This document shows positions 1 to 62,759 of a stretch of 64,000 nt of DNA, one piece after another (position 1 is the stretch's first letter; the number at the start of each line of letters is the position of its first letter). The translations under genes and the position numbers were made by a program. Source of the DNA: Takakia lepidozioides (lineage: Eukaryota; Plantae; Bryophyta); assembly GCA_030704615.1 (NCBI GenBank), contig CM060734.1:33542001-33606000 (forward strand), given 5' to 3'. The notes below the pieces were generated by a model. It did no database searches and had not been told where the DNA came from. It worked only from the letters and a program-made list of their open reading frames with translations.

Positions 1-11
1 CAGAACATTAC

Positions 12-1361
12 CTGAGGAAGAAGCTGGTCATCAGTGGGAAGCCGTAGGTCATCCTTGGTATCCCCATTCTCAGTTAGGAGGCTCACCTGTATTCACAAGG
101 TGGGAAATTAGTATGACCAGAAGCAAAAGAGCCTGTACAGTGTCCAGTAAGGGGAAAGAAGATGGCCAATATACAATGAACGACAATTGCTGGCCTTAAG
201 GACTCAGAAGCCCGTAAGATTTGCTGGGACAGAGCATAAATGATGCAGTAGGGCAGATGACACTTACAAATCCATCCTCAGATATGTCAATCAGCTGGTA
301 ATCAGTGCGCACCACCTCTGGAACCTGTCACAAGCACACCATAATTGTAAGCTAAACAGCATCTCTGTTATTATTAGCAAAACTCAGCCACACAAAAAGC
401 AAGTGGGTCCAGATAGACTCTTACATCACAATTGTGAGAAGAAGGAACAATATCCTCCAACTTCTTCCCAGTAAAGATGTCTATTCCCACGAAGTGACAC
501 TTGGCGTGACCGTGCTTTCCAGTCTTCGACGTTGACACCTCAACAACCTTCAGAGGACCACACACAGCTTATGAGCCTAGCTTCATCATTACACTTCTGT
601 CTGCGTCAAGTCTAACTCATCATCAGACATAAACATGCAAGTTCATCTCTACTTGCTAGAAGATTCAAAGTGTCCATTTCGGCCGGCGGAGTCTCACAAC
701 CCTCCACCGTTATGCTCTCCTGCACTCCTTCCTACTGTACTGAAAACTTAACCAACCTGAACTAAGATCAAACGCTGCACGTTGCCGTACTAAATAATAC
801 GAAAAAATTCAATAACCCTTGGTTGATTCGATATACAGACAGACCCAGTCTCTCCCGGTAAACACATTCCAAAAACGCAGCATTCGAAGCAATTGACCTA
901 CGAATCTAAATTAACGAGAGGACCAGCGTAACGTGAAAGCGACAGGACACCTAGGCTTCCGAGGACAAGCCAGGAACAACCTTCGAAACCAACAAAAAGC
1001 GCGAATGAAACACATGTAGAGGCATGTCTACCCGCGGGGGATCAAGTATAAAACACGACTGGAGGACAACCTCTGCACCAAGAAGGGCTGTACAGCATAC
1101 ACCCCTACCAGGCACACTGTCAAAAAAGAGTCGTAAGGCAACTTGCCAGGGACGAAAGAGCGAAACCCTGAAAGTCAGTCTGTGGCTCATAACTCATAAC
1201 CCTCAACACGCATACAAACGAAGAGACCGGAAGAGTACCTTGCAAGGCCTCTGCTTGATCACAATGTAAGCGTTCTTGCGAATGGTTCCAGCCTGCTGCG
1301 GGAAGGTCTTGGAGGCGCCGGCATCGGCCTTGGAGTCGAAGTGATGATCATCATCCGACAT
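12..1361 (-). CDS. eIF5A: Eukaryotic translation factor 5A (hypusine-containing); 4 coding exons in window (1239-1361, 425-547, 268-324, 12-86); 3' end runs off window
   Basis: Spliced translation [41 protein letters not shown]|[25 protein letters not shown]...SSHNCD|[19 protein letters not shown]|[25 protein letters not shown]. Contains the hypusine motif [12 protein letters not shown]; all introns GT-AG and in phase. Confidence 0.97.
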
Positions 1362-4300
1362 GGCTATATCTCCTCTGCTTCTTGTGTGCAGGCAGGCGGG
1401 GATTGAGACAGCGCAGGAGATCCCAAGCTCTTGCCGCTAGATCTCCCCGCTTCCTCACCTCCGAGAGGAATCGCCCTCTCCGCTGCCTCCCAATCCGCGC
1501 GCCCAACCCTGCGATCAAGAAACAAACAAAGGGCGATAGCAGATGCGAGCGCGCCAAAAGACAGCGTCGGGACTTTCCTCCAGGGCTTCGAGGCGGCCAC
1601 CCCCTCACCGTCCGATCCCCATCTGGACGGCTCCTGCCGCTTCTCCCCGCCCCCGCACCACCGCCCATTTAGGGCTTCACCCGAGTGGTTAGAAACTTGT
1701 GCCACCGCCTACTCCCGGTCACCCTCGCTCCCCGCAACTCCCCTTTCTTCCTTTCGCCACCGCCACCCGAAGGCCCTATTCCGCCCTGCTTTAGGTCGAT
1801 CCGGTGGCATAATCTGCCATCCACACGTGGCGGCTGACTCTCCGTACCTGCAGAATCAGCAAGCGCTGCTCATTCTGCAACGGGAATCGGCCCAGTGGGG
1901 TGTATTTTTTCAGATTTATACGCGTTGATCGTATATACGTATCGTACACTGATAACTGCCTTCGAAGCTCCTTGGAGGTACCCCTGTTTTCGACGAAGAA
2001 AAAAGCAGCGAGGTTTTTCAGAGTTCAGAGATCGATCTGTGTCAGTGTTGTAGGATTCAGTGTCGAAGTGGATGTGGGTTTGCACTTGTGTGGCAAGAGC
2101 AGAGGTGAACTCTGGAATAAAATTTCTGGGTTTACAGATGAATGTCGGACCCACCAACTAAAAGGAGGTTGCTGGATTTGCTCCTTATGAGAAGAAAATT
2201 GTGTTGACACAGCTGGAGACTAGGTATTCAACATGCAATTCAGAAAGCCATTAGTCGCGGGGTCTCCTTTGAGGATGTAGCAATTGATTCATCATAACAG
2301 GTGCAGCTTTATATGGCATGGCTAGTACAAAATGACAAGGGCCTCTTGGGCCCATTCCTTTCTTGGACTGCAAATCAAACTTCTGTCTGTGCATCTTATC
2401 AGCAAGTTGTATTCCTATCACAATTGGGTTCTGCGCCCACAAGTGGAGTTCAGGTTAGTCCGCAGAAATATTCCTTTAGTGCCACTAATTGTGGTCACAA
2501 AGTCGCCCATGGCAGGCAAGACATCACAGTGGGCTGCCATGAGGGCATGCAGGAATGCTATCAGCTCCAACTCTATCTCTGCGTCCAGGACTGGTACCTA
2601 GTCCCACCAACTGCTGTCCCCCTTTACTGGTTTTGTCTGGGAGTCTTTTGGCAGTGCATCAATCTTACAGTGTGAATGTTGGCAGGTTGGGTTTAGCTTC
2701 TTGTCTTAGATCACGATAATAGAAGAAGTTTCGGTCATTTATTTATATTTATATGCCCAGATGATGCGCACTCTTTCTGGTGAGTGAGGAAGCTCTATGA
2801 GTTTATCACAGCTAGAGAGATAATGTTAATAGGAAAGGCTCTGAACAGACCTTTCCAACCCCTAAAAGGAGGCTGGACTGTCCTCCAGCAGCTGCTGCAC
2901 GCGTGGGTGTTAATATGATCCTGACACTCCGCACGCCACACCATGACTTAGACCAATCCAACCTCTAGAGAAACTTCCTCCATCAGGAGAGGCTAATGTA
3001 GTACCTGCATATGTTGAATCCAGTATTTGAGAGAGAGTGGAAGCAAACCCTGCAATTGATGTGAAAGTCCACACAGAAAGATGTCTGAAGAGAGAAAACC
3101 CCCCAGCCCCCAACCCAAAGAGAAAGCCATGGGGCCCATCTTGAAATGGCCGCCTGAGTAAATCATTCTACCCTGCTTGAATGCTCTTTACCAGCCCTGT
3201 CAAATTGAACAGCAAATCCAGTGACCCCAGTACACCAGGGGCATTCAAAACGCACTCAGTGGTATAGTGTGCAAGTAGACCCCGCACCAGCACCACCGCT
3301 GGGAATTATATGCCAGCCACCCAGAATGGAGACAGCAGTACAGGTGCTTGATGTGTATTCACCACTACTGGCCGTGCAATCCGCAAAGTCACCAGCAATG
3401 CTATTTGCTCGACTTGAAAATTTTCAACACATAACTCTGGCTCTAGGACAAAAAACTCGTTCAAATGGTCTGGTATGGCACCAAGCTTTCTGCCTCCCTC
3501 AGTCACAGAAGTGGAAATATCTGTAGGACCCTGGTGTGGAGGACAGGCCTGTCAGAAGTGAAGAGACAGCGCCATGCAAGCACAAGAGATGCATCGTCTA
3601 TATTGACTGTCAAAGGCATAAAAAACACCTGCAACTCTTGAAGCCATGGTGGCAAGGAAATTTCAGTATCCTCTATCCTTCTACACTTTTCCAAAAACAC
3701 CCTTGTCGATGTGTTGTTCACCTTACCAACCATACACTGTTGCTGTGGAACAAGGGATGAAGCAATGGCAGTGGTCATTAAGACAGGCAACTCTGATCCC
3801 TGCAATTGCATGTCCACCTGCAACAATGCTGCTGACAGAAGGAACTTATGCACACACACTGCAGGTATGCCCTGAAGAGTTGGCCTCCTTGGATAGGGAG
3901 AGAATAAAACACTTAATTTCTCCACTGTCATGACACTCACTTCATCACTAGCTAAGACACTTTGGCCCCCTTTCCACGTTGCCTCTGCACAGACTCACCT
4001 GAACCTCTCATTATATGCCGATCATCATCCCAGATACAGAGCCTCAGCTTTTGAATGTCTGCTGTTAAACTAAGAGCTGTGATGTTGGCTCTCTCAACCC
4101 CATGACAACAGCTTGCTTCAGCCTTCGCTGGAATTTGTGAGATGTGCAGATAATACGTGGGTCCCACTTTTTCTATATTCACAGAAGCACTGGCCCATTT
4201 GCTGTACCTTGGTACTTCATGGCTGTTTGTGATGTCAACTCCAAGGGATCAGACCAACCCTTACCCTCAACCCTGATATAGATGTGAGCAGCTTCTTTTC

Positions 4301-4650
4301 CTGTTTCATGCTTAGAAGGAACAAGTCATCCAGATCCTGGAACTCCCCCTCATATCTACTGTTGGGGAATTCCCAATCGTAATCCAACTTGGAGAATTTC
4401 ATTACCCTTGCAATAAAAGAATCTCTTCTCCCACCTGTCACTTCCACTAACCACTCACAGTCATTGCAAATATCAATATCAATATTGATTTTACAGGATT
4501 GATGCTGAGAGTGCTCACTTCACCCAGTGCTAAAAGCACAACCATCCTTCCTCACAAAGGTCTCTAGCTACACTCTAATCTTGTGACTTCATGTCATCAA
4601 ATCACACGGCATAGGTAAGCATAATATGGTACAAAAAGAGTTTCAGCATG

Positions 4651-5965
4651 TCATAGCATCATGCCCCAAACAGCCTTAGATAAGTCGTACGAGGATTTCT
4701 GCGAAGGGTCCAGAGAAAATGTTGCAATGTCGTCCGTGTTCAGCAGGGCTTTCCATAGTTAAGTTGGGGAATCAGGCCATAATCACTGTACTTTAGAGTT
4801 GAGCTGTTGATGCCTTCAGACCAGAATAGACTAGCAAAATAAGATACTGTAACATGCAAACTTGCAGAAAGCACAAAGAACGTATGGGACCAGAAAGCAT
4901 AACAAACATGGCAAGGAGTAGAAAGAAAACTCAACAAGGGACAATGGATTGTAACCAGCAAGAAAAAAGAGGAATCTGACATTACTAAAGAATGGAATGG
5001 AGGAAGGATACTGCCAACAAATTTGTCAGTCTCTGACAGGTTGGGAATGATGTCCGAAACAGTTGAAAACAAGGAGAGCTCATTCCTGCATTCATGACAT
5101 CCAGGAAGTTACACATGCATATTGGCAGCCTCCCAACTGAAAACCTACAACTGAACAATTGTTGTCATTGTCCTCTCTGTCTTATTTTTCATTTCCCTTT
5201 TCTTCCTCAACCCAGGCAGAGCATATTCAAGTTACATTGCTTGCTGTGTTCTGATCCTTTCTCATATGGGGGAAGATAGCCCTTATTTACTCCTCGATTT
5301 GGAATGGAGCGTTGGTTAACCCTGACGTTGATTCTGTTTAGGCACCAGCATTGAGTGATATGTCAAGAGTCTACCCTGTGGACAATTCAAACTAATCCTG
5401 GATTGCCCTCTATGATTGCAAGGATAGTAATAAAAAGACTGACTTGAGACGTGACTCCTCCTTCACAAGCTGGTCAAGAGTCTGCTTTTGAGTCTTGATG
5501 GAATGCAGCTGCTCGCCCAGTGCCTCCAGGTCCTCCTCAATCGATGTGCATGCACCATCCACCCCCCCACCCAACACCTGGTATTCTCAGAACCACTGGC
5601 GGACGGTACCACCTGGTAGTCAAGCGACAAGTTGGAGGCACTTATCTGGCACTGGTTCGCATTTCATTTTCATTGCGGAGGACCTCTTCCAAGTTCTGTC
5701 GCAACATCTCCATCTCCTCACTCTGCTCAACATCGTCCTTGGCAGCCACCACTTCTTCCTCTTTCTGTAACAATAATTGCTCCAACTCTTTATGTACGCC
5801 AGTTTCGTAGGAATGGCATTTGGCCACCAACTGGACCAGCGTGTTGATAAGGTCCTGCAGCGTTGCCACCTCGTCCGCGGGCTTGAAGAGTGAAGGCAAC
5901 CCTTCCAGCAACGCTATCGTCTCCTCCACCTCCCGCATATCCTCCACCTCCTCTCCTCCCGACAT
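4651..5965 (-). CDS. SPC24: Kinetochore Ndc80-complex subunit SPC24-like, ~197 aa; exons 5646-5965, 5444-5545, 5012-5085, 4651-4748
   Basis: Coiled-coil N-terminus (ELEQLLLQKEEEVVAAK..., SIEEDLEALGEQLHSIKTQKQ) followed by NELSLFSTVSDIIPNLSETDKFVG|TLLNTDDIATFSLDPSQKSSYDLSKAVWGMML*, resembling the plant Spc24 C-terminal domain. The four exons join in frame (594 nt). Confidence 0.78.
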
Positions 5966-6083
5966 TGTGCCGTCTCTCTCCTCTCTCCTCTCTCCTTTCT
6001 CGATTGTGTACGCTGTGAGCGAAGCTAAAAAAGAAGTGAGGAGAGCGCGGGCGGAGGTGATAAAGCGAATCAAACACTTGTGT

Positions 6084-7760
6084 TCTTTTTTCTTTTTTCT
6101 TTTTTTTTGAGAACAGGAAGTAGAGGCCCTGGACAAGTTTATTGAAAATAGGGGAAAACAAGAGAACGGAGGAAAAAATAATGTCCAGGGATGCCATAAA
6201 GGCGTATCACATGGGGAACACCCAGCACCGATAGGAAGGGGGGTGAACAGTAGGAACAAGCCGGATCGTGGCTAAACTATGGTGCCTTAGTGATGATGAT
6301 GAATGAGCCCAAAGTCTTGAGATGAGCCAAAAGAAGAAGCTCCAGGATGATGAAGGAGCCCCAAGTCTTGAAAGGAACCAAAAGAAGGGGCAGAGGACTG
6401 TAGTATGCTACCAATCCTAGGGGAAGGGTAACAATATAACAAGTCCTGAAAACAAAGAGACTATCGACGACTGAAATCTAGATGCACTTTAGATTTAGAA
6501 CTGTGGGTCTTGTTGTGCTTCCAGTTGATGTCTGGTGCATCCGACTTAGCCGGTGACTTGCCAAGAGACGGGGAGGTGGTCGTGCCATGTAATTCGAGAG
6601 TCATCGATTCTGGAGCAGAGGATGTCGTCTTTGGCCCAGGTGGTGTCGAAATCCGCAAGCAATTGCTAGCTCCTGCCTTCACTGCACCTACTAATGGCTG
6701 TTTGCAAGGACACCCAAGCCTTACGCCCCTCAGTCATTAGATCCGAATATAGTTTGCAGAGTATCAGTCTGATGCTGGGGCGTTTTCCCTCAAAGATCAA
6801 AACACATCTGGCCTTCCATATTGCCCATAGCGTGTGTGCTCTAAGACAAGCCCAGATCGGGCATCCGTTCCAATAAATTAAGCAACAGGAGAGGAGCTGA
6901 TAGGGGTTGGAGGGCCTGCCAATGGGAATAGAAGCCTGCCACTATAGTCCAAATCCTAGCAGGAAGGTGGCAGGTAAGCAAAACATGCTCCAAAGTTTCA
7001 TTGTAACCACAGTTGCACAATCAGGCAGGCAGGGTTGTGGCCCTGAAGGTTGGCTGCCACAGGGAGGATTTTATTGGCTATCTTCCATAAGAAAACGCTG
7101 ATTTTGGTAGAACAGTGCTTTGCCCAAATATCCTTCCCGATTTGCTTCCATCATTTTTCCTGCAGGCTGAGGTTCCATTTTCCATTCCACTTAGCCGTGA
7201 AATTAGCGTTGCCCAGCAACAGTTTATAGCCAATCTTGACTTTGTACCCGAGGAGAGGTGTTTTCTTGACGTCCATCCAGGTCCATTCTCCCGGGTCAAG
7301 TTGAAGTCTGCTAAGGGGATAACGCAAGAACCATGTTAAGGGTGTCCTTTCGGCCCAGCAGAACTCTCCTCCAGGGGGTGGCTTGGGATCTGGTATCCCA
7401 GTCAGAGTTTCAAAAACTCTAATTCTAAAGGCGGATTCCTGGCACATGTGTCCTTACCCGATATGCAGTAGGGTCCCTGCAGAGTTGGCTAGAAATCTTG
7501 GGCCTTCCCAGTGCAATGCAGAGCTGGAGATAGCTAGCAAAGAATCTGTCGCCTTCATAGTTCCCGAACCAGCAGGGGAGGCTGTTATGCGAGTTGTCCC
7601 CCCTGGTCAGTAAAGGCAAAACGTATGACACTCCTTGCTTAATGTGCTCCCATCCGTGTCTGATAGAACTCGTGGAAATGAGCGTGGACAGGATGTTGGG
7701 AAGCAGAAAGCCTCCATTTTCCCAGATATCGGCTATGTGTTCTTATTCTCTTCCTCTTTT
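6084..7760 (-). mobile_element. 5'-truncated L1-like LINE remnant with poly(A) tail
   Basis: Minus strand encodes the ORF2 C-terminal signature AHTLWAIWKARCVLIFEGKRPS (~6780-6845). A-rich tail at ~6084-6110 (T-run on +). Homologous to the + strand copy at ~47.1-48.0 kb, including the 3' UTR motif TGGGTGTWCCCCATGYGATACGCCTTTAYGGCAT. Confidence 0.75.
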
Positions 7761-8233
7761 TTTTTTGAAGGAAAACCGGCTGGCCTTGAGAGGGAAAGCA
7801 AACCTTTATGAGTAATGAGCCCCAGACCCATAGGTCAATGCACTGTAACGAACAGACTATTTTTTCATACACAGATTATGGATGACAAAATGTTGCAATT
7901 TGTTTCTTTCTGATTTTTTGTTGCATGCACTCAAACTACCACTTCACATATTCATTTGATCACGATGTATTTTTCGTTTTTATTTTTAAATATTTCAATT
8001 GGTTTCGACAGCTGATCAATGCAGAGAAAAACTTTCAGTCGCAAATATGGATAGCATTCAAGCATAAAAAACTACATGAAGTAGAAGCTCCTCTGCATGA
8101 ATATTCAGATGCTAAGTCCACGATACTTGTGCATGCAGTTCGACATGGAGATCAGTCAGCAAATGAACTCAAAAAGAGAGCAAGCATTTTATGGGGCTTA
8201 TTCAACTTACTGCACTGTCCCTATTAATTAATA

Positions 8234-9581
8234 CTAGGGTAGCTTGTGCCGTTGGCCCAAGTGTCCAGTGTCATCTAAGCCCAGATGTAAGATCTTCTAT
8301 GTATCCCGGTGCATCTCCTATGTCGAGGCCCAAGTGCGACCTCTAGGGTAGCCCATGTGTGAAGAATTGAAATCTAAGACCAAGTGCAATTTCCTATGTA
8401 TCCCAGTGTGTCTCCTATGTCGAGGCCCAAGTGCGACCTCTAGTGTAGCCTATGTCGTTGGCCCATGTGTGAAGAATTGAAATCTAAGACCAATACTTGC
8501 AATTTCCTATGTATCCAAGTGTCTTCTATGTCGAGGCCCATCTAATTAAGCCCAAGTGCAATCTTCTATTCATGTATCCAAGTGCATCTCCCATTTAGAG
8601 GCCCAAGTGTCCAGTGTCATCTAAGCCCAAGTACAATCTCCTATGTATCCAAGTACGTCTCCAATGTCAAGGCCCACTTTGCTATTTTTTGTGAATTTCC
8701 AGCGACCAAAAGTACTTGAAACTCCAAATGTCCCACATGAAAGGCCAATCATTGCTCCATGAAAGCCCACTTTGCTCTTTTTCTCGAATTTCCAACGACC
8801 CAAAGTACTTGAAATTCTAGATCTCCCACACCGCTGGTCCAAAAATCATGAGACCAAGTCGGTGCACCCCTCCTCACTGAGGGTTTTCCAACTATACCAA
8901 GCACCCGCGCTGGCCCCGCGGTTTGGGAGATCTTAACGACGCTACAAAACAAAACAAACGTCTCGCTTCATATATTGACTAGGGTAGCCTGTGCCGTTGG
9001 CCCAAGTGTCATCTAAGTCCAAGTGCAATCCCCTACGTATTCAAATAGCTTCTCCTATGTCAAGGACCATGTTTGAAGAATTGAAATCTAAGCCCAAGTG
9101 CAATCTTCTATTCATGGATCCAAGTGCATCTCCAATCTACAAGCCCAAGTGTCCAATGTCATCTAAGTCCAAGTGCAATCCCATATCTAATCCATTTTCT
9201 TTTTTTTTCCAAAGAGCCTATGACCAGATTTGAACCGGAGACCTTTCCCTAGATATCTCTCCCCTCGAGGCTCGAAGCATTGTCCAAGAATGCCCACTTT
9301 GCCATTTTTGCTATGTTTTTGCAAATTTCCAGCGACCAAAAGTACTTGAAATTCCAAATCTCCCACGTGACTGAGGGCCAATCATTGCTCCAGGAAACCC
9401 CACTTTGCTATTTTTCTCGAATTTCCAACGATCCAAAGCACTTGAAATTCCAGATCTCCCACACCGCTGGTCCAAAAAACATGAGACCAAGCCGGTGCAC
9501 CCCTCCTCGACGCCACCAAGCACCCGCATTGGGTCTCAAGAACGCTACAAAACAAAACAAACGTCTCGCTTCATATATTGA
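8234..9581 (-). mobile_element. Non-autonomous Helitron, head-to-tail tandem dimer (units 8979-9581 and 8234-8978)
   Basis: On the minus strand each unit starts TC(AATATATGAAGCG) and ends with a hairpin CTTGGGCC-AAC-GGCACA(A/G)G followed by CTAG. The junction reads CTAG|TC and the outer flanks are A and T. Internal degenerate GCCCAAGTGCAAT repeats. Confidence 0.8.
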
Positions 9582-10619
9582 TAGCTAGATCCTTTAAAGT
9601 TTTTTTTAAAAAAAATGCTTATGTTCAATTCACAATAATACTAATGGTTCGTAGATCATCTAAAATCCATTTAATAATATACAGTCACATTAGTGAAACA
9701 AAGATAATCCTATATGTTATTTTAAAGATCATTCAAAAGATGTTGTTATTTTGCTAAAATAAGTTTAATGTTGCTCTTTTGTTCACATGCATGCATCAGA
9801 TGTGGCCCGCTGCTCACATAAAACGCAAGCTGGGAAGAAAATTCACTCATTGTAATCGGAGGATTAATGACAAGCTGAAAAAAACTCTCTCACGATGAAC
9901 TTAGTTAGCTAAAACCTCATGCGCACTAAACAATGCAGAATGTTGAGCAATCGTTCCTGCTCGTCGTGGAGCCCCTATCTCTAGTGTAATAAACGCAAAA
10001 AAGTGATACATCCAAACACAACACCTCCTGGAAGAGTCGCCTAGAAGGCCCCACAATCTGATGACCATCACCACCACCCTGGTCTGACTCTCTACCCCTT
10101 CGACCACCACGCTCTGATCATCTACCACGTCGTCTGCGTTCTGCTCCTTTACTATGATTCTGAATATTTTTGGTACGGTGACTCACCACTAAAGTACACC
10201 CCTCACCATCGATAGCAGCAGGTGTAAGTGGGCAACTAGTCTGCACATCTGATAAAACCTTTAAAATCCTTCATATGAAGATAATCTAGTTAAATAATAA
10301 TTAATCCATCTTAATGTTTAGCCGTGGACAAAGAAGGGGTGGAAGAGAGATGGATCATCCAAATATAAAATGGTCTCTTGCTAGCTACAAATTCCTTCAG
10401 TTTACAATAAAGGGAAGGAGGGGAAAAAAAGGAAAGCACCAAATGATGAGGGATGTATAGCACAATAAGAGGGGAATGAGTAGTTGGACCATCTTGTTAC
10501 TTGCTTGTTGCTTCTGCATTTTTCATTTGTTGTGCACCTAAGCATCGTGCCACAACATACATCGCTGTCCACCACACAATCTAAAGCACACAATCCTAGA
10601 AAGCAGTCTGTCGTAGGAG

Positions 10620-11828
10620 CAGTCTGCTGAGATAGACATAGTCACCAGGGTTGAATCTCCGAACCCCAGGACGATAGCCCCCACCATGTATGGTAGTATA
10701 CCTCAACATATCACGATGTTGTGCAATGGCAAGGTTCTCGAAAGCCATGGGCATGACTTTCTTGAACAACTCTGCACGCTGCTCACATGCATGTGCCCAC
10801 ACGTCCGGATCATCAAGATTAAGAACTGTAGCAGCTTCTCTGCGAATGGATGTAGGCAAATCCGGCTCTCGGCCAAAGAGAAGAAAGTATGGTGAGAAGG
10901 AGGCAAGTGATGCTTGCTTGCTGAACCTGTAGCCCATGGCTAACCAGGGTAACTGAAGGTCCCAATCTCCTAGGTGTCCCTTCTGCAAGCCATACTTGCG
11001 CAAACCCCTCTTTACTATCTGAACAACTCTCTCTGCCAAGCCATCGGCCTCAGGATGATCCCGAGAAGTGGTGCGGTGGTCTATCAAGGCCTTGTCACAC
11101 CAAGCCTGAAACTCCCCCAAGAACTCTCTCCCTTGGTCCGTGAGTACCTCAGCTGGAGCACCGAATTGGCTAAGCACACAATCCAAGAATGCATACGCAG
11201 CTCCCTCACTAGCCTTATCAGGCAATGGAACCAATTCAATCCACTTGGAGAAGTGTTCCACCATCACCAACGCGTACTTGTTGTGGCGCATGGTCAGTGG
11301 CAACGGCCCTGCGAAGTCAAGACTCCACCTGTAGCCCAATCCCATGATCGGAAGAGGGTGCAATTGTGGAGTAGGGGCGTTGAATGAAGCACGCACCCTG
11401 TCACACACCATGCACCTAGCCACAAATTGTTGCACCTCTGTGTGCATACCACGCCACCAATATTGCCCCTGCAGTAGACTATGAGTGCGTCGCACCCCAA
11501 AATGCCCCAACTCCTCATGGGCATGCCGCACTAACCGTGCCCGCTGTGTTGGGTGAGGCACAATCCTCACTCGACCATCCTCCCACACTCGGAGCAGGTG
11601 TGTCCCCTCCCACTTGAACCTCTTGGCTCGTTGTAGGATCCGATCCCTCTCCTTGGCAGTCACAGTGGCTGCAGTGTCTCCAGTGCGGAGGTAGTCCAAC
11701 ACAACTGAATCCTCATGTATATCTTTGGCGCCACCTTGCTCATTGCTGGCCTCAGGGTCCTCAGACACTTGATCTACAGTCATCCCTGTTGTATGTCCAA
11801 CCTGGCCTTCCGCTGCCAAGATACACAT
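10620..11828 (-). pseudogene. Gypsy integrase (HHCC + DDE core), C-terminally truncated
   Basis: HEELGHFG...CMVC zinc finger; WSLDFAGP, VLTDQG, GLAERVV catalytic motifs; homology stops after PGDYVYL. Confidence 0.92.
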
Positions 11829-11900
11829 AAATGCAGATGCATGTCATCCGGGCACCATCTTCTCGTCCGTCTCACCATGCCACCAAGCTCCAGTGTCATC

Positions 11901-13330
11901 CTACTGGCTCGTGCATGGATTGCGACTCAACCCATCTGCATTGCGATTGACCAAACCCGGTCGATGCACCACCTGAAAGTCATACTCTTGAAGGATGAGT
12001 GCCCACCGTGCAAGCTTTCCCGTAAGCTTGTCTGACTCTATCAACCACTTGAGTGGTTGGTGATCCGTGACAAGGGTGAAGAGATTGTCGTATAGATAGC
12101 ACCTGAAGTGTGCCACGGCCCACACTGCAGCTAAGCATTCTCCCTCATATGAGCTATACTTATACTCTACAACGTTGTTCGAGCGGCTAGCATAAGCCAC
12201 TACGAACTCTCTTCCCTCATCATCCACCTGTGTGAGCACCGCTCCAAGCCCCAACATGCTCCAATCTGTATGCAGCTGAAAAGGACGCCCCCTGATAGGT
12301 CGTCTCAAGATGGGCGCTGAGGTCAACCTCGCCTTGAGCTCTTGAAAAGCTTGTTCTTGCTCATCTTCCCACTGCCACTCTTGGTTTACCTTGGTCAGCT
12401 TGGTTAGAGCCTTTGCAATGGCACTAAATCCCTTAACAAACCGTCTATAATAGTTTGCTAACCCCATGAAAGCTCGAACTCGGCTCTCATCCGTGGGGCG
12501 TGGAACCTGTGCAATGGACTCTACCTTAGTCTGCTATACCCCCAATCCTCTAGGATATATCATGTGACCCAGATACTCAATCTGGTTGTGGAAAAACTTG
12601 CACTTTCCCAGATGTAACTTCAATCCGTGCGCCCTCAAGCGCTCAAATATCACCTGAAGGTGTCTCTCATGCTCTTCCACCGTAGCACTAAAGATGATGA
12701 TGTCATCTATGTAGCACCGAGCAAACTCCACACCTGCTAGAATCTTGTCCATGATTCTCTGAAACTCTGCCGGAGCGTTCTTAAGCCCAAATGGTAAGAA
12801 CCGCCACTGGTATAGGCAATCCTTCCCGTGCTCATTGATCCCCCAGAATGTCGTCTTTTGCTTATCCGCCTCCTTGATCGGCAACTGGTGATATCCGGAT
12901 CGTAAATCCAACGTGCTAAAGACCTTGGCATGCCCAATGGCATCAAAGATCTCCTCTGGTGTTGGCATGGCATACCTATCGGACTTGGTCTGACGATTTA
13001 CAGGCCGGTAATCACCGCACATACGTCTCTTCGTCCAATTGCCAAAGACATCCTTCTTGGCTGGCATCACTGTGGCTGAAGCATACTCTCCCCCAGATAG
13101 CTCCACCAAACCCGCCTCCCAAAGGTCCTAAGTTCTCATCTGAATCAAGGACCTCTCCATGTCACTGTATCTATAGGGTCTCCGAAAGATTGGCGTGTCA
13201 GTAGCCAATTCAATGCGAATCTCTTGACCCTTCAGTGCTCCTAAGTCCTTCAAACTGAAGGCAAAGCAGTTCCTGTAAGCCCTCAAGAACCACCGTATAT
13301 GTCGTCTCTCTCCTCCGGTGACTATAGGTC
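11901..13330 (-). pseudogene. Gypsy reverse transcriptase and RNase H
   Basis: [34 protein letters not shown]; RNase H LHTDWS...YEGECLA...TDHQPL...ADGLSR. Confidence 0.95.
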
Positions 13331-13709
13331 CAACATCAGGCTCCCAGTTGTCCTTCGTGACTGCAACCTTGAGTCCAGCAGGCTTCGAGGTAGAAGACGA
13401 GTCCCGTGGTTGCTATGCTGCAACCTCTTGAGTAGTGACCACTGCCTCCTCTGTCAGTGACAATGTCTCATCCTGCCCCATCATCCCATCCTTGAGGACC
13501 TCCTCAATCCGAGAAAAATCCCCAACCTGATCCATCACCGCCGCCTTGGCTGCCAACTCCTTCTGAACCTCGAGCACCTCCCACGTGTGCCATGGATGCG
13601 GCCTGCACCTCGTGGTCCTCACCTGCTTGCCCCCACTCGCTGCCTGTACCGTCTCGGTAGGCAGAGAGACCATGAAGGGAAATGTACTCTGTACTCTGCG
13701 CTGCTCAGC

Positions 13710-14670
13710 CATAGCCAAGCTGATAATCCAGGTCAAGCAATTGAGATCCATTGCTTGCCCCAACACCTGACGATGTGATGCCTCAGAAAGAGATAGCACC
13801 GCCGTGGTACCTGTGGTAAGACCCATCGCCCGCTCACGCTCGTCAGCATTGGGCTCCACTAATTGTTGCAACTAGCTATCCCACAAGAGGCCAGGTCCAC
13901 CATCCCGAAAAGCATGGAATCCTGGGAAGCTGAGCAGTGTAGGTAATGCTGCTCGTGGTTGACCCACCCTGTTGACCACTGCCAAAGGCAAACGGTCATC
14001 GTGTCTCACACGTTGAGACTGTCTCCCTGTGTCCAAAATGTTATCCACTGTGAGGTGTGCTGGCCGCTGCACCCCATCAAATGCATGCTTGAGCAGTGCG
14101 GGTGGCATCAAGTTAGTCCACCATAGCCGTGGACGATGAGCCCATGACCCCACTGCAGCTGCATCCAGCAACACTGCTGACCCAAGCCACGACCGGACTT
14201 GATACACACTGGCCATCACCCTGGCCCGAGAATCACCCATCAGTGGCACATTCTCCAAGATGTATGCTGGAGATACAGCTTGATGAAGCTGCAAGTGGCG
14301 CAAAATCCGCACCATCTCCCAAAACAGACCCGTCCTTGAGTCTCGCAATCCATTGCCATGCCCGGCTGATGAATGCCTTAGCAGGGCCAACCTGCCACTA
14401 TCAGATCAATGGAGCCAACCCGCTCCAAATCCTGCGCCCCCAGCAACGAAATGTCTGCTGGCAAGGCTTGTTGGTATCCACAAACTGCAGACACTGGCAA
14501 CAAATCAGGGTACTGCTGTACCAACTGAGCAACATGGCGCAGAGAGATGCGTCGTGCAGTCTCATCCCTCTCCACATACAGGTAACGTCAAATTTGTACA
14601 CCTGCCTGCAGTACTGCAGCCAATCCAGTGCTGATCCCGCCAAACAAGTCCATAAGGCATATGTCTTCAT
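13710..14670 (-). pseudogene. Dnmt3-like cytosine-C5 DNA methyltransferase domain inside pol
   Basis: Motif I LMDLFGGISTGLAAVLQAGVQI(*)RYLYVE (~14570-14660); motif IV SIDLIVAGWPC(*G, frameshift)HSSAG; GLRDSRTGLFWEMVRIL; motif VI YILENV; motif VIII DAAAVGSWAHRPRLWWTN; motifs IX/X ERERAMGL...RQVLGQAMD. All are in canonical order. Confidence 0.9.
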
Positions 14671-14809
14671 ACGGGCACTGCTACACAAGAGGTGTGGTGT
14701 CCAATGGCGACAACTAAGGTGGTCCTGGTGCAATCACCGCACTCTCCTCTTCTCCTGACGGTACGAAGGCCTCTACCCAGGCTTGTTGTACCCGTCCATC
14801 AGCTGCCTG

Positions 14810-15440
14810 CTACAAATCCTTGCTCGTACCCCATAATGGAGTGTGAGCAACCATGGCAGGCAACTCCGCCGTACCATGCATGTCATCCTGCTCTGCTGGA
14901 GGTGGCACATCCTCTGCATGGGCATTGCCTTCCAGCAACTCTCCAGGCCAACTAACTGCAGCTGTAAAGGCGGCTAGTGTTGGCAGTTTGCCCCACTGGG
15001 CAGCCGCAATACCCCCAATGAATGTCACAGGGAGTTGTGCATGACGACCATCCCCTGACTGCCATCCAGGCCTGTAGGATGCTGACTCCTCCCAAAAGTC
15101 CAAGGTGAAGCCCATAGGATATAACACTGCCCCACCAACAATGACATCGTAAGAGACCGCGTCTGTCACAATGGCCTTGGCTCGCATCACTGAGCCATCT
15201 ACAGGATGATCTGGTTGTAGTCCAATAGCCAACTCACGCCGTGTCATGCCCCGAGCCTGCTCTGATCCTCCCAGAGATGTCTGTATCTGGAAAGGACAAG
15301 GCTCCATATCCGCCTCCATGAGGCCCAAACCTGCAATAGCAGCTCTGCCCAACATCAGTGGCTGAGCTCCTAAGTCCAACAAGACCCCCAGTGGCCGGTA
15401 CTTCTTGCCTGGTCCACTCAAAGTGAAAATGTCTCTCTAG
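14810..15440 (-). pseudogene. Retropepsin-type aspartic protease of the DNMT-gypsy element
   Basis: GVLLDLGAQPLMLG (degenerate D-S/T-G active site) and SYDVIVGGAVLYPMG C-terminal motif; lies between gag and the DNMT domain. Confidence 0.75.
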
Positions 15441-15529
15441 TTGTCTAACAAGACAACTCCAGGTGTCATCATGGCACGCTCAAAGGCTGGCCTAGCTGGC
15501 AACTCCGTCAACCTGGCAGCTGCAGCTTG

Positions 15530-17419
15530 TCATGGCGCAGCCATGGCAGTCTTGACCCTCAAATCCGAGGATCCCTCTGCCACTACACCTTCCAGTAATT
15601 CCGCCCCACTCTCGCAGAGTGTTGCTGCTAGTCTGAACACTGCAGCTGGTCTTACCCCCGGCGTCGCAATCATGGTTGCCGAGAACAGTGGGGCTTGATA
15701 CACAGAGGTGGTTGCCCCCAATAACACACCGGCTACACTAGTCTTGGTAGCAGGTGTCAGTGTTGCACGTGTAGCTCTCCCCAATGGCATAGTAACCTCC
15801 GCCTCGGTAACAGTCGGGCGAGAACTAGGTGCCATGGATGGCGTCGACACTGTCTCCGCCAATGTGAATGACTGAGGAAGCCTTGCCTGACGGCTTGCCT
15901 CCCCACGCTGTGGATCCAATTCTACCTCTGCACCTCGTGGCTCAGGAACTCGTGCTGCTCCTCGAGTCACGGCTGCAGCAGACTCCACCTGCACTAGTGG
16001 TAGTGCTGCTCCGCACATGAATCCCATGCCTCCCATATCTCCTCCCTCAGGAGCAGGAGGTGGACCATCCCGCCTGGGAGCCGGTACCACCTGAGCTGTA
16101 GCCATGGCAGCGAGCCTCTGCTCTAGCTGCTGAAGCCGGTTGGCCATGTCTTGGTCAGCACCGTGACCTCCGCGTCCTTGGCCATGTTGAGCTTGCCCTT
16201 GGCTTGCACCTCGTGCCCGACCACCTCGTCCTCTCTGGGCTCGTCCACCTCGCCCCCGGCCACCATTGTTCCCTTGGAACTGGCCTGGGCGCAACTCAGG
16301 GTGCAAGTCATAACACTGGGCATCTCCATGCCTATACTTGCCGCAATGCCCACACTGCAACTGTGCAAGCTGTGCTTGTGCCGGCCTTCTGCCACTCTTT
16401 GGGCAATCTCTCTTGACATGGGGTCCTCCACATGTCCAATATATCACCCCTGGTTGCTGTTGGCCTGCAAAAGATGCCATGGGCCTCTGCACCTGAGGTC
16501 CCCTGTAAGCTCCATGGAACTTGGGTTGGGCAACCTTGCCCCCATGACCACGCTGTTGGGCAGTCCCTTGTACCTGTTGGCTGGCAGCTGCACCTCGTGC
16601 AGGCATGTCCTTGCCAAATCCAATGGTAACAACTCGCTCCTCCACCATGTTGAGCTCAATCCGCTCAGCCAGCAGAAACACATCCGCTAATGTGGATTGG
16701 GCCGCTTGTAACAGGGTTGCATCCCGCACCCTTCTCTTGAGCTCCTTGTCCAAAATTCCATACCAGAACTGGACTGCCTGAGCTTCAGTAACCCCTTGGG
16801 TCACACTTATCAAGCGCCTCATACGAGTGTAGGCCTCTCGCAAGCTCTCACTGGATTTGCGCTGGAAGTCTTGCAAACTTCGCAGCTTCTCTGTCCGTAC
16901 ACCTTGGTAGTTCATCCGCAACTCCTGGAAGAACTCCACCACCGGGTTGAATCTAGGCACATGTGTTGTAATTGCGGCAGGAGGAGTAGTAGCACTTTTT
17001 GAACTGGTACCACCTGCAGAAGTGTCGGCACTACTTGTTCCACTACTAGTGCTTGTAGTTGGAGATGTTTGTGTAGCTGCTGGTGTCACCGCTGCCCTTG
17101 TGCCTCTAGTGATTGAGACATAGTTAGGTGACCAATACTTTCGCCACTCCTCAATCTCCACCGCATGTCCCCGCCTAAATTCATGGTAATCATCCATGGG
17201 CGGCCCCTCAAGGTGCTGGAATAGCCCCTTCCACGCCATAAAAGGCGTAAACAGTTGTGGATTACGCATTTGCTGCAAATCACACCAACTGTCAAACTCT
17301 TGTATAAAGTCATCAAGCTCGATGGTGCCCACAGCTCCAGAGTACCTACGTGGCCCCTTGGTAGCTCCATACATCTCCTCCATCGTGTCCCACAACAATG
17401 GCACGGAAATGACTTGCAC
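15530..17419 (-). pseudogene. Gag of the DNMT-gypsy element
   Basis: 629-aa ORF with retrotransposon gag core (FQRKSSESLREAYTRM...QFWYGILD), zinc knuckles (WTCGGPHVKRDC, CGHCGKYRHGDAQC) and an RGG-rich tract. Confidence 0.85.
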
Positions 17420-17648
17420 CCTCGGCGAGAATCCTCCTGACTCCGAGTCTGAACCTTCCTCAAAGACACTGAAGGTGAAAGTGGCCTAAACCGCACACCT
17501 TGTCTTGTGTACCCACAAGTATCGCTGGTGCTTGTACCGGCACTCCCCTCAGCAGCTGGTGGCACCTCCGTGATGAAAACTCACAACCCAACCGATTGTC
17601 AACCTGTCTCTAGTCCCCACTTTCTACAAGGTAACCGGGTAAAGAACC

Positions 17649-19280
17649 TGTTGCGGCTACTGGTTCAAGCAGGAATAATAAGTTTCTAACGTAGACCTGT
17701 ACCTGCACCTGCATCCACCGCAAGCACTCCTATGGTCTGCTGGTCATCAACCCAGCCTCACCATAGAAGAAACACTGGTGGTCTTGCTGGTCATCACTCC
17801 AGCCTCACCACCGACAGCATACTCTAGGATTGGCCGGTGATCAAATCCGGACCAACCTCCTATGAAAACAAGCGCCCACACAAAGCTAACATGGCGCACA
17901 GTCAAGCATGCAGGTGTGGAGGGGATCCAAACACAAGAAAATCAAGACAGCAACTCCCCCACACCAAAAACACTCCACGGTGTCGCTCCTACAAGGACAC
18001 CCCAGCCCAAACCCGGACTGACTCTTGCCTCCACCTACGGAAAGGTTTTGGCCTATAGAGAGGGTGAAAGACTATGGAGAAGAGAAACTAGAGCAATTCC
18101 TAACCCCAGAATGCTCTCATCCCACCACTCTCCCTCCTGTCTCTATCCACTCGCTTGTATGGCTGTGGCAAGTATCCTTCAATATCCCTCAATCAATCCT
18201 TCAAGAGCTCTTCAACATTGTCCACCAAAGCTCCTCGAAGGGTCCTCCAAGGACCCCAAAGATCCTCCAAACACTCCTCCAAGGACCCCAAAGATCCTCC
18301 AAATACTCCTCCAAGGGCCCTCAAATATCTTCCAAACAATCCTCCAAAGGCCCTTAAATTTCACTAAGTCCTTTCACTGTTGATACCTTAATAGAGGTAT
18401 AGTCTGAGGTTGCTAGGGTCCCTTATGTTGATGATACATTTACAGAGGTATAGTCTGAAAATGAGGGTTCTGTTTGGTATACTAACAGAGGTATAGTCTG
18501 AGCTGATTTGGGTCCACATATGGTGATACCTCAACAGAGGTATAGTAAAAAGGGACAAGCTCCTGTTTGGTATACTAACAGAGGTATAGTCTGAGCTGAT
18601 TAGGGTTCACATATGGTGATACCTCAATAGAGGTATAGTAAAATGGACAAGCTCTTGTTTGGTATACTAACAGAGGTATAATCTCACATTAGGGTTCACA
18701 TATGGTGATACCTCAACAGAGGTATAGTCAAAGGGACAAGCTCATGTTTGGTATACTAACAGAGGTATAGTCTGAGCATACACTACTAGGGTTTGTAATG
18801 AAGAGCTAGAATGCAAGTCCTTGACTTCTATGCTTCTACTCAAGCAAAAATATGGTCTCTAGGTGGTCATAAGAGGCATCTTCTTGCTCTCTTCCACCCC
18901 AATGTGCAACCAAGAGTGGTCCAACTCAACTTGCAAGTCATTGTCCACCAAATCAATCCCCCTTCTAGTCCTTGGGATTTGATTGCAAACTACTATATCT
19001 CCATTGCCGAGCAATCATGCATTTGTCTCCTCATCACTTGACAATTGCTCCAAATCAACACAAATTATCTCAATGTGTAGAAGCAATGCTTGTCACTTAC
19101 AATAATGCTCCCAAGCAATCCGCCTTGGATCCCACTCTCACGCCATATGCCTCATTAAGGGTCTTGCACCAATCCATCATCCATGTGCTCCTCGTGGTCA
19201 TTTGAATGCATGTTTCATGACCTCTTGGCCTATGTGTTGCTCTCCTTCATCATAACATGAATCAACACCTCTCCACAACA
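17649..19280 (-). repeat. Putative 5' LTR (or its 3' part) of the DNMT-gypsy element
   Basis: Bounded by TGTTGCGG (17649) and CCACAACA (19280), a near-perfect inverted terminus. 17670-18240 is homologous in inverted orientation to 25870-26435. Confidence 0.55.
18240..18776. repeat. Tandem arrays within LTR: ~31-bp TCCTCCAAGGACCCCAAAGA units (18240-18350) and ~9 AGAGGTATAGT-core units with alternating ~44/49-bp spacing (18383-18776)
   Basis: Repeated units directly visible. Confidence 0.85.
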
Positions 19281-25800: not shown

Positions 25801-26439
25801 GTGGTGGCCCATGTTGACCTGTGGACGGCCTGTGCTGACTCGTGGAGGCACTGGTGGACTGCCTAAGGATTGGCATGTGGTCTTGAAGGCCGAATTTCGA
25901 AGCTCGTGGAGGGCGGTTTGAGGAGTATCTTCATGATATTCCCATGGTCATGCAAGTGAGGGAAGAGAGGAGAGGAAGAGTGTTGGGATGAGGGCATGTT
26001 GGGGTTAGGCATTGCTTTAGCTTCTCTTCCTCGTAGTTTCCACCCTCTCATTAGGCCAAGACCTTTCCGTAGGTGGAGGCAAGAGTCAGTCCGGGTTTGG
26101 GTTGGGGTGTCATTGCAGGAGCAACACCGTGGAGTTGTTTTTGGTGTGGGGGAGTTGTCGTTCTGATTTCTTGTGTTTGGATCCCCTCTATACCTGCATG
26201 CTTGACTGTGCGCCATGCTAGTTTTGTGTGGGCGCTTGTTTTTATAGGTGATTGGTCCGGATTTGATCACCGGCCAGTCCTAGAGCATGCTGTCGATGGT
26301 GAGGCTGGGGTGATGACCAGCCAGACCATCATTGTTTCTCCTGTGGTGAGGTTGGAGGTGATGACCAGCCAACCATAGGAGTGCTTGCGGTGGATGCAGG
26401 TACATGTGTAGGCTATGTTAGGAACTTAGTATTACTGGA

Positions 26440-26620
26440 TGAATTAGCCAGAATGGGTGAGTGTGAGCAATATGGATAGGGTCGGCCGTGGGATCCAGTG
26501 GGGATTGGGCGGCCCCTGCCTGGGCGAGGAGGTCTGCGTTTTTGTTACCGGTGATACTAGTATGGGAGCGAACTTTGAGAAAGTGTATGGGGTGATTAAT
26601 GGAAGCCGCTTGGTTAATGC
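26440..26620 (-). pseudogene. RNase HI C-terminal fragment (retroelement-derived)
   Basis: HFLKVRSHTSITGNKNADLLAQAGA matches the RNase HI V.aH....GNe.AD.LA motif. Confidence 0.65.
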
Positions 26621-31800: not shown

Positions 31801-33550
31801 CCTTTTCCAGGAGTGGTTGGATGACTTTGTGATCGTGTACATCGACGACATCTTGGTGTATTCGAAAACAAAGGAGGAGCACCTGGAGCACCTCAAAAGG
31901 GTGTCCCAGAAATTGCGGGAAGGGAAGCTGTATGCCAAAGCTTCAAAGTGCAAATTCGGGGTCACAAAAGTGGAGTTCTTGGGGCATGTGATTACACAGG
32001 ATTGGATCAGAATGGATGACAGGAAGGTGAGGGCAATCTTGGACTGGGAGCCTCCGACTTCGGTCCCGGGAGTGCGATCCTTTCTAGGACTCGCCTCCTA
32101 TTACCGGAAGTATGTGAGAAATTTCGCCAAGATCGCGGGGCCGCTGTCAGACCTTCTGTGTAAATCCAAAGTCTGGGCATGGAACACCTTTTGTGGCCAA
32201 GCTTTTGCTGAATTGAAGCAGCGGATGGCGGAAGCTCCAGTCTTGAAAATTCCGGAGTTCGATCGTCCGTTCGAGATTCATACAGATGCGTCGGACTTCG
32301 CGATTGGGGGTGTACTGATGCAAGATGGACGTCCAGTGGCTTACGAAAGTAAGAAACTGAATGAAGTGGAGCGACGGTGGCCGACGCACGAGAAAGAGAT
32401 GAAGGCGGTGGTGCACTGTCTTGAGCTTTGGCGCCACTATGTTGGTTCCAACCCAGTGAAGGTGTTCACGGACAATGTCACGGTGAAGTATTTTGCCACG
32501 CAGCCCAAGTTGTCCCCAAAACAACTTAGGTGGCAAGATACTTTGGTGGTGTTCGACGTGGATATCCAGTACAAACCAGGACGGGACAACGTAGTGGCCG
32601 ATGCTTTAAGTAGAAAGCAGCAGCTAATGTTGGTGTACAGGGGCGAGACGGCGCTCCAAAGGAAGATCCGGAAGGCTTGCCGGAAGGATGAGCTGGCGAA
32701 GTCCGTGATGCAGGACTTGAGGATGGGGGTTAAATCGCAGTTCCATTTGCAAAATGGACTGCTCTGGTATAAGCAAAAGCGTCTCTACGTGCCGAAGGGA
32801 GGGATCATAGATAGCCTCTTGAGAGAATGCCATGATAGCCCGCTTGCGGGGCCACGGCGGAGCCAAGCGCATTGCGGCACTCTTGAAGAAAGAGTATTTC
32901 TGGCCCAAACTGAGGGAGGAGGCAGAGGAGTATGTCAAGACATGCACCACATGCCAACAAAACCGGAGCGAGTACAAAAAGCAAGCGGGGCTGTTACAAC
33001 CCTTGCCGATTCCAGAGGGGACTTGGGAAAACGTCTCGATGGATTTCATGACTGCTATGCCGCTGCCAAAAAGATTCGATGCAATCATGGTGGTGGTGGA
33101 TAGGTTCAGTAAAATGGGCCATTTCATCCCCACCAAGGAGACGGCAACGGCGCAGGAAACAGGGCAACTTTACTTCGCCCACGTCTTAAAGCATCACGGA
33201 GTCCCGAAGGATATTGTCTCGGACCGCGATCCAAAGTTTACGAGTAAATTTTGGAGGGCACTTTGGAAGAAGATGGGGACAAGGCTGAAGATGAGCACCG
33301 CCTTCCGACCTACGACCGACGGCCAAACGGAAAGAGTGAATTCCGTAGTGAAGCAGATCTTGTGGAATTACGTGTCGGTAGACCAAACAGACTGGGTGGA
33401 ACACTTAGACGCGGCAGAGTTCTGTTATAATAACACAGAACACTCCGCAACGGGAGTTTCCCCTTTCGTATTGGTCTATGGAAAAGCACCTCTGGTGCCG
33501 ACAAGTTGGGCCGCCCAGGACGTTGAGGAACCGGCAGTAGCGGCAGTACT
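28882..33550 (+). pseudogene. Chromovirus gag-pol (frameshifted, interrupted by solo LTR)
   Basis: Gag PDTFEG...WLLELEQYF; zinc knuckle CFNCGEPGHMAKKC; protease VDTGASHSF; [15 protein letters not shown]; RNase H TDAS; integrase SMDF/SDRD/GQTERVN. Frameshifts near 29335, 31405 and 32850. Confidence 0.93.
29514..30174 (+). repeat. Solo LTR of the same chromovirus family inserted in gag
   Basis: TGTCGCG...CAACA copy of the flanking LTRs with near-perfect 5-bp TSD TCCAG/TCTAG; gag reads through once it is removed (DIRYVQ|AFNVLLL). Confidence 0.9.
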
Positions 33551-62700: not shown

Positions 62701-62759
62701 TAACGGTTGCCTGGAGATACTCGAGGAGGGCATTGCTGTCATGCGTGGAGTTGCTTTCC

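Follow-up and report, generated by a model that had tools for sequence, protein, structure and literature searches.

The 64,000-nucleotide stretch of Takakia lepidozioides DNA analysed here (contig CM060734.1, positions 33,542,001 to 33,606,000; hereafter the window) carries on its minus strand, from about 18209 to 10610, what is in all likelihood a dead, 3'-truncated copy of a Gypsy-DNMT3 retrotransposon, a Gypsy element with a cytosine methyltransferase (MT) in its coding region. This reading combines the identity, the architecture and the decay of the copy. For identity and architecture by themselves, namely a Gypsy-DNMT3 element with the order Gag, protease (PR), MT, reverse transcriptase (RT), RNase H (RH) and integrase (INT), our confidence is higher still. 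The original prediction, made from the sequence letters, had described a Gypsy element with a C5 cytosine methyltransferase between protease and reverse transcriptase, and both the domain order and the Pfam matches bear out this observation. Its interpretation is upheld in part: a Gypsy element with a DNMT3-like C5 methyltransferase, carried as a family trait and present in land plants, is supported, while a single polyprotein and a live element are not. The Gypsy-DNMT3 kind has been known since 2018 from Klebsormidium; the window copy, for its part, is a dead relic of the ordinary sort.

Six-frame translation gave stop-free segments whose minus-strand order, 5' to 3', is Gag, protease, MT, reverse transcriptase, RNase H and integrase. 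Stops and the frameshift were left unrepaired, the pieces were searched separately, and the broken MT was placed in a tree with X at each break. The Gag region (15533-17485) is open for 651 codons up to a premature stop at 15532-15530 and matches Retrotrans_gag weakly; the aspartic protease region (14813-15436), bounded by premature stops at 15439-15437 and 14812-14810, is recognised by a weak match to Asp_protease_2 and by alignment with 10 relatives. The replication enzymes are identified by RVT_1 (PF00078, E 6.2e-34) in the reverse transcriptase (12537-13127, followed by a premature stop at 12536-12534), by RT_RNaseH (PF17917, 1.1e-34) and RT_RNaseH_2 (PF17919, 2.8e-32) in RNase H (11904-12533, with premature stops at 11903-11901 and 11846-11844), and by Integrase_H2C2 (PF17921, 1.2e-16) and rve (PF00665, 2.5e-14) in an integrase composed of an H2C2 zinc finger and a DDE core (10599-11843, homology ending at about 10610-10623). 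These domains stand in the PR-RT-RH-INT order of Ty3/Gypsy elements. Between protease and reverse transcriptase lies an insert of about 430 codons. The window also holds, on the plus strand at about 28900-33650, a conventional Gypsy element with a CCHC motif, protease, reverse transcriptase, RNase H and integrase and no MT, which serves as an internal control. In this control the reverse transcriptase, 38% identical to that of the MT-bearing element, follows the protease directly, and the insert is therefore a genuine peculiarity of the MT-bearing element.

The MT domain proper extends from 14680 to about 13640 on the minus strand, and the region that first drew attention, 13710-14670, is its core. 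It is distributed over four stop-free pieces. The first (14680-14591) contains motif I, DLFGGISTG; the second (14587-14381) contains RYLYVE and AGWPC; the third (14405-13875) contains ILENV and AHRPRLWWTN; and the fourth (13871-13416) contains ERERAMG and RQVLGQAM and continues in frame into a C-terminal tail of the Gag-PR-MT product (13416-13639) whose amino acid sequence is poorly conserved among relatives. All of the methyltransferase motifs originally quoted are thus present on this strand in the canonical order I-IV-VI-VIII-IX/X. This order is not circularly permuted, a trait of DNMT3 that sets it apart from DRM, and alignment to DNMT3A is collinear. In the PF00145 check that had been proposed, the third piece alone matches with 25 bits against a curated cut-off of 22 (E 1.5e-5), and scores in intact relatives reach 46 bits. 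The motifs are readable in the window copy, yet a stop at 14380-14378 occupies the codon right after the catalytic cysteine and is followed by a frameshift; the family has the motifs of a methyltransferase, and the window copy cannot make the enzyme.

The assignment to a DNMT3-like type is supported by sequence and by predicted structure. A single MT piece searched against the PDB gave only a marginal match (DNMT3A, E 0.09), and a family profile was needed. Built from 40 aligned MT domains, this profile placed DNMT3A (2.6e-24), DNMT3C (1.2e-23) and DNMT3B (1.8e-22) on top, followed by DRM (5.8e-14), M.HhaI (4.6e-10) and DNMT2 (about 1e-8); DNMT1 and CMT were not among its PDB matches at E<=0.01. 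An AlphaFold2 model of the Marchantia MT domain has a predicted local distance difference test score (pLDDT) of 93, and in a Foldseek search with this model the top 50 PDB matches were all DNMT3A, DNMT3B or DNMT3C, with target template modelling scores of about 0.8-0.85 for catalytic-domain chains. Among the 40 domains, which, two Marchantia paralogues aside, share only 33-52% identity with the Marchantia reference, the catalytic cysteine, the E and N of the ENV motif and the arginine of motif VIII are invariant, and the glutamine after the cysteine is nearly so. The proline of the PC dipeptide is not invariant, and the family consensus at this place is GWxCQ.

Comparison of the window copy with an intact Marchantia element gave amino acid identities of 52% for Gag, 48% for protease, 68-77% for MT, 78% for reverse transcriptase, 83% for RNase H and 75% for integrase. 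By this measure the MT is kept about as well as the replication enzymes and far better than Gag or protease. Such conservation points to selection on the MT domain, as judged from domain-wise identity and from the invariant catalytic columns, the available sequence pairs being decayed or having saturated synonymous sites.

A phmmer search with a 177-residue MT piece against 1.84 billion representative sequences returned 660 matches at E<=1e-3 and 350 at E<=1e-10, and many of the matches are polyproteins of 1000-3200 residues. Named relatives come from Marchantia polymorpha (Mp_4g09160, Mp_8g17980 and four MARPO models), Marchantia paleacea, Calypogeia fissa, Sphagnum troendelagicum and Closterium, and, with a different layout, from Scenedesmus and Haematococcus. 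The family is thus present in land plants, in liverworts including M. polymorpha and in a peat moss, and beyond them in Closterium and numerous metagenome contigs. We compared the DNA of ten relative loci. The order Gag-PR-MT-linker-RT-RH-INT, with or without a terminal PHD finger, recurs in a JGI metagenome contig (L001), in C. fissa (L003), on chromosome 4 of M. polymorpha (L005), in two further contigs (L007 and L008) and in S. troendelagicum (L010); a Closterium locus (L009) has the order MT-RT-RH-INT, its Gag and protease part lying outside the view. At the nucleotide level the window copy aligns with the Marchantia element from 17823 to 10610. The linker between the stop described below and the reverse transcriptase (13131-13412, ending at a premature stop at 13130-13128) is 60-67% identical in tblastn comparisons to the Calypogeia, Marchantia and Sphagnum copies. 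In the source organism the family is very abundant: 58,422 contigs of its DNA cover this 5.9 kb at >=90% identity, the MT part included. A 2173-nucleotide contig that is 95% like window 11615-13790 represents another copy; an RNA origin for it is a guess, and no transcription is claimed.

These data bear on the proposal that a fragment of a host DNMT3 gene or pseudogene was captured once by a single Gypsy copy, or was brought beside it by nesting or assembly. The stops and frameshift within the window MT, together with the lack of terminal repeats delimiting the copy, speak for such an event, but at least seven other loci, drawn from different genomes and samples, share the PR-MT-linker-RT junctions of the window copy, several of them with open frames. 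Furthermore, the 350 representative MT relatives at E<=1e-10, many of them within polyproteins, the absence of introns, the collinearity of the window MT with the open frames of relatives and the 58,422 covering contigs all argue against it. The refutation test that had been named came out in favour of a family trait: other copies of this RT and integrase family carry the domain, with shared junctions and no introns. A one-off capture, rejected on the junctions shared across loci, has a negligible probability; the MT domain is a family trait, DNMT3-like, in frame in the coding region, intronless and conserved among copies, as in Gypsy-DNMT3 elements.

The best preserved relative is the element on M. 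polymorpha chromosome 4 (L005; AP019869.1, 6826-17657), which is apparently intact, both of its frames (1362 and 1045 codons) being open. The M. polymorpha annotation treats the first of them as a host gene, Mp_4g09160, and UniRef names the paralogue Mp_8g17980 a DNA (cytosine-5)-methyltransferase. Their annotation as ordinary protein-coding genes of 1150-1280 residues, and the UniRef name, would suit domesticated host genes that no longer belong to a mobile element. Directly after the chromosome 4 gene, however, RT-RH-INT-PHD continues in frame, and split direct repeats that are 99-100% identical lie on either side; the proteins begin with Gag and protease; M. polymorpha has at least six paralogue clusters with 83-95% MT identity; and copy number in the source organism of the window is very high. 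We therefore consider domestication very improbable, although not quite as improbable as a one-off capture, and regard the liverwort genes as parts of mobile elements.

Three further observations concern the relatives. An ENA contig (L006; ctg159469_5x_c, 1-18357) consists of 2.2 head-to-tail units, 8262 bp long and 99.8% identical, of a complete Gag-PR-MT-RT-RH-INT-PHD element; a tandem arrangement, a multimeric or circular molecule and an artefact of assembly are all conceivable. In Closterium sp. NIES-54 (L009:9909-11088) an internal tandem duplication of 585 nucleotides, 99.7% identical, doubles the RNase H region. Moss MT domains (P0309, P0341 and L010) are 63-73% identical to that of Marchantia (P0162), as close as those of the two liverwort classes are to each other. 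This closeness suggests that the domain is strongly constrained or that it has been transferred from one bryophyte lineage to another.

The coding region of these elements is divided by a stop codon that is a conserved signal rather than a product of decay. In the window copy it lies at 13415-13413 on the minus strand, in the readthrough-type context TAG CAA CCA (13407-13415), and it stands at the same place in six relatives: TAG CAA TCA in both the JGI metagenome locus L001 and Calypogeia L003, TAG CAA CAA in Marchantia L005, TAG CAA CCA in the NCBI contig L007, TAG CAG TTA in the ENA contig L008 and TAG CAA CCC in Sphagnum L010. UAG-CAR is thus found at the homologous position in seven of seven loci of the bryophyte clade, and the full CAR-YYA in five of them, while the five codons upstream of the stop differ in every locus. 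The frames on either side are long and open in L001, L005, L007 and L008, with the downstream frame in phase, and in at least 25 independent cluster representatives gene callers end a Gag-PR-MT product at this stop. UAG-CAR-YYA is the classical leaky-stop context of tobamoviruses, and the elements combine what is expected of such a site: a fixed in-frame UAG, a conserved downstream context and variable neighbouring codons. Since UAG-CAR is present in all seven loci, Gag-PR-MT would be the direct product and RT-RH-INT-PHD would be made only by readthrough; most likely, intact members express Gag-PR-MT as their main product and Gag-PR-MT-RT-RH-INT-PHD as a readthrough product. The notion of one polyprotein is therefore replaced by two products separated at a conserved UAG-CAR, and the MT, previously grouped with the reverse transcriptase, goes with Gag and protease. 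As in the Gag-UAG-Pol arrangement of gammaretroviruses and at the tobamovirus stop, an in-frame UAG lies between an abundant upstream product and a downstream product that contains the replicase; the bryophyte elements differ from gammaretroviruses in that the stop follows protease and MT rather than Gag, and readthrough is here a prediction.

The window copy has decayed extensively. Relative to the intact M. polymorpha frames it has 12 premature stops, 8 of them together with one frameshift (14375-14377) upstream of the conserved UAG and 4 downstream. Three of the stops (14590-14588, 14380-14378 and 13874-13872) and the frameshift, where other copies carry one extra letter at 14375-14376, fall inside the MT. 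The active-site triad of the protease reads D-L-G, whereas in intact relatives it reads D-S/T-G (alignment with 10 relatives). At its 3' end the copy breaks off after about residue 928 of 1045, so that roughly the last 117 codons of the downstream frame are absent; alignment with L005 ends at L005 16635, and the L005 element continues to 17657. The copy thus lacks the C-terminus of the integrase, the PHD finger and the 3' repeats, and neither a PHD finger nor a chromodomain was found after the integrase of the window copy, which is truncated there. At the break points other copies among the source-organism contigs mostly read other letters, and the breaks are therefore private to the window copy. 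The private differences have a bias towards T and A: the window reads T or A where others read C or G at 100 + 66 = 166 places, compared with 37 + 40 = 77 on the other side of the comparison, which fits deamination of methylated cytosine in a silenced copy. The suggestion that the domain gives the element its own epigenetic enzyme fails for this copy since, dead and 3'-truncated, it gives its element nothing now.

The termini of the family differ from those of a plain Gypsy element with long terminal repeats (LTRs). Direct, inverted and low-stringency BLAST searches found no terminal repeats around the window copy, so that the two LTRs of Ty3/Gypsy elements are lacking from this truncated copy. 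The intact Marchantia relative has split direct repeats of a DIRS/PAT-like kind: A1 (L005 6826-7122) equals A2 (17248-17545) at 99%, B1 (17134-17246) equals B2 (17545-17657) at 100%, and the order is A1 ... B1-A2-B2, with the B repeats flanking A2. The Sphagnum copy (L010) has direct flanking repeats of about 780 bp that are 71% identical. ARAGORN detected no tRNA genes in the window and no tRNA match of the kind expected at a primer binding site.

Upstream of gag, the window copy has a non-coding 5' leader (17486-18209, minus strand) that reaches at least to 18209. Its part 18209-17664 matches 25901-26443 on the plus strand with 85% identity over 549 nucleotides, revealing a second relic of the 5' leader of the same family, beside which a search with probe pieces found no gag, protease or MT. 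The leader also aligns with that of the Marchantia element (17823-17707 with L005 9611-9728, 75%). Within it, at 17738-17831, is a doubled motif of about 45 nucleotides, GTGAGGCTGG..GTGATGACCAGC, and the segment that contains it is conserved between window 17690-17860 (minus strand), window 26245-26415 (plus strand) and L005:9595-9745. This doubled motif may be a cis signal acting in packaging, priming or dimerisation.

Long relatives of the element exhibit two arrangements of the MT domain, PR-MT-RT-RH-INT(-PHD) and RT-RH-MT-INT-PHD. The latter is common in metagenome contigs (P0017, P0021, P0022, P0043, P0256 and about 150 other proteins). When 82 MT domains were placed in a maximum-likelihood tree, a single branch separated the two layouts, with a support of 100 in the Shimodaira-Hasegawa-like approximate likelihood ratio test (SH-aLRT). 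The six paralogue clusters of M. polymorpha form the sister group of the window MT, again with SH-aLRT 100. Among named hosts, RT-RH-MT-INT-PHD is found in chlorophytes (Scenedesmus and Haematococcus) and PR-MT-RT-RH-INT in streptophytes. The chlorophyte and metagenomic Gypsy elements (Scenedesmus sp. PABB004 'pol', Haematococcus lacustris) share with the window element the Gypsy backbone, a homologous MT (35-42% identity) and a PHD finger after the integrase, but their MT lies between RNase H and integrase, whereas that of the window lies between protease and reverse transcriptase. The tree contains no host DNMT3 outgroups and fits a single acquisition with a later move as well as two separate acquisitions.

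The closest described system is KnitGypsy-Dnmt3 of Klebsormidium nitens (de Mendoza et al. 2018, PMC5890265), which combines Gypsy reverse transcriptase, RNase H and integrase with an intronless, non-rearranged DNMT3-like domain that is under purifying selection and is placed inside the DNMT3 clade in that study. Its repeats were described as 'the same as that of a DIRS retrotransposon' (PMC5890265), and the M. polymorpha relative shares this split layout, which we consider the best available evidence for assigning the bryophyte elements to the Klebsormidium kind. The hosts described here, liverworts and a peat moss, were unreported in the 2018 survey, whose species table includes Physcomitrella and Selaginella and lacks Marchantia and Sphagnum (PMC5890265). 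Further differences are the very high copy number in the source organism, K. nitens having fewer copies than Symbiodinium (PMC5890265), and the UAG-CAR stop and the PHD finger on the integrase, which the text of PMC5890265 does not mention (PHD, 0 occurrences). No Klebsormidium relative surfaced in our protein searches, including an exhaustive search of representatives, in which length windows and word filters may hide some. A literature search outside the subscription journals found no paper that reports Gypsy-DNMT3 from land plants, mentions the Marchantia genes by name or deals with the conserved stop or the PHD finger; a 2026 preprint mentions 'streptophytes (Gypsy-DNMT3)'. SymbioDIRS-Dnmt3 of Symbiodinium likewise carries a DNMT3-type domain on a retroelement, but has the tyrosine recombinase of a DIRS backbone rather than a DDE integrase, resides in unrelated hosts and is in its authors' view an independent acquisition (PMC5890265). 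Host DNMT3 enzymes (DNMT3A, DNMT3B and DNMT3C; PpDNMT3) have the same catalytic motifs I-X in canonical order. The element MT differs from them in being about 20% identical to human DNMT3, in having no PWWP, ADD or plant DUF readers on its chain, in being embedded in a Gag-protease precursor and in a longer stretch between motifs VIII and IX, of about 95 residues as estimated from alignment.

In intact members an upstream frame encodes Gag, aspartic protease and a DNMT3-type MT, and a downstream frame reverse transcriptase, RNase H, integrase and a PHD finger. We propose that a leaky UAG-CAR-YYA would yield abundant Gag-PR-MT and a minor RT-containing fusion, in the manner of the gag-UAG-pol of murine leukaemia virus. 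The MT might then be freed by the protease inside the particle or the nucleus and methylate the new DNA of the element or its new surroundings, while the PHD finger on the integrase could pick the insertion site by reading histone tails. That the MT is an active DNA methyltransferase seems to us moderately probable. SymbioDIRS-Dnmt3 carries out de novo CG methylation in yeast (PMC5890265), and retroelement DNMT3 domains can therefore be active. That its substrate is the cDNA or the new insertion of the element itself we put at somewhat below an even chance. Published ideas on the benefit of carrying an MT are that it might imitate host methylation, guard against deamination or hold the element itself in check.

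Several points weigh against this scheme. As used here, DNMT3-like denotes ranked similarity and not placement in a clade among the reference DNMT families, and the tie to KnitGypsy-Dnmt3 runs through shared design and repeat layout rather than through direct alignment. Readthrough is predicted solely from codon context and its conservation; CAA-CAA in M. polymorpha and CAA-CCC in Sphagnum replace CAR-YYA, and the more distant loci L002 and Closterium L009 have no stop at this place. Release of the MT by the protease is likewise a prediction. Finally, in the sole experimental test of a Gypsy-type enzyme, made in yeast with the Klebsormidium domain, no methylation was detected, a result that its authors judged inconclusive (PMC5890265).

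The yeast result also lends weight to a different explanation, in which the domain is kept without methylating DNA and instead acts on RNA, as DNMT2 does, or serves the Gag-PR precursor as a structural module or as one that binds S-adenosylmethionine or DNA. The Gag-side product, of which the domain is part, binds the RNA genome; this and the variable proline of the PC dipeptide are in keeping with such a role. However, human DNMT3B failed in the same yeast assay (PMC5890265), the catalytic cysteine, ENV and the motif VIII arginine are invariant and the glutamine after the cysteine nearly so, and the best sequence and fold matches are the DNA enzymes DNMT3A, DNMT3B and DNMT3C, with E-values better than that of DNMT2 by about 15 orders of magnitude. 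A role without DNA methylation is accordingly the less likely explanation, although one to be taken seriously, and we continue to favour an active DNA methyltransferase.

Short-repeat arrays flank the element in the window on both sides, at 18380-18800 and 8290-9590 (units of about 45-90 and about 95-630 nucleotides), and may belong to other repeat families. Farther away are exons of a host sugar-transporter gene of the major facilitator superfamily (58080-61190, plus strand; PF00083) and a Copia-type gag_pre-integrase fragment (62597-63067).

What a transposon gains from carrying an enzyme that normally silences transposons has been an open question since 2018, in part as Symbiodinium and Klebsormidium are hard to manipulate and the Gypsy-type enzyme has never been shown to be active. 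The intact-looking copy in M. polymorpha, with open frames and repeats that are 99-100% identical, makes this question directly testable, because methylomes, transformation and CRISPR are available in Marchantia. The conserved leaky stop informs the dosage of the enzyme, as the MT would be made with Gag and not with reverse transcriptase. Several M. polymorpha 'genes' are the first reading frame of these elements and should not be counted as host DNMTs. The most far-reaching view, which as a whole we hold to be unlikely at present, is that bryophytes, Marchantia among them, harbour live elements that use a leaky UAG to make a DNMT3-type enzyme at Gag-level abundance and with it methylate their own new DNA and possibly that of the host, the domain having moved once between the algal RT-RH-MT-INT and the streptophyte PR-MT-RT layouts. 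If this is true, transposons and not host enzymes would be the source of part of the bryophyte methylome.

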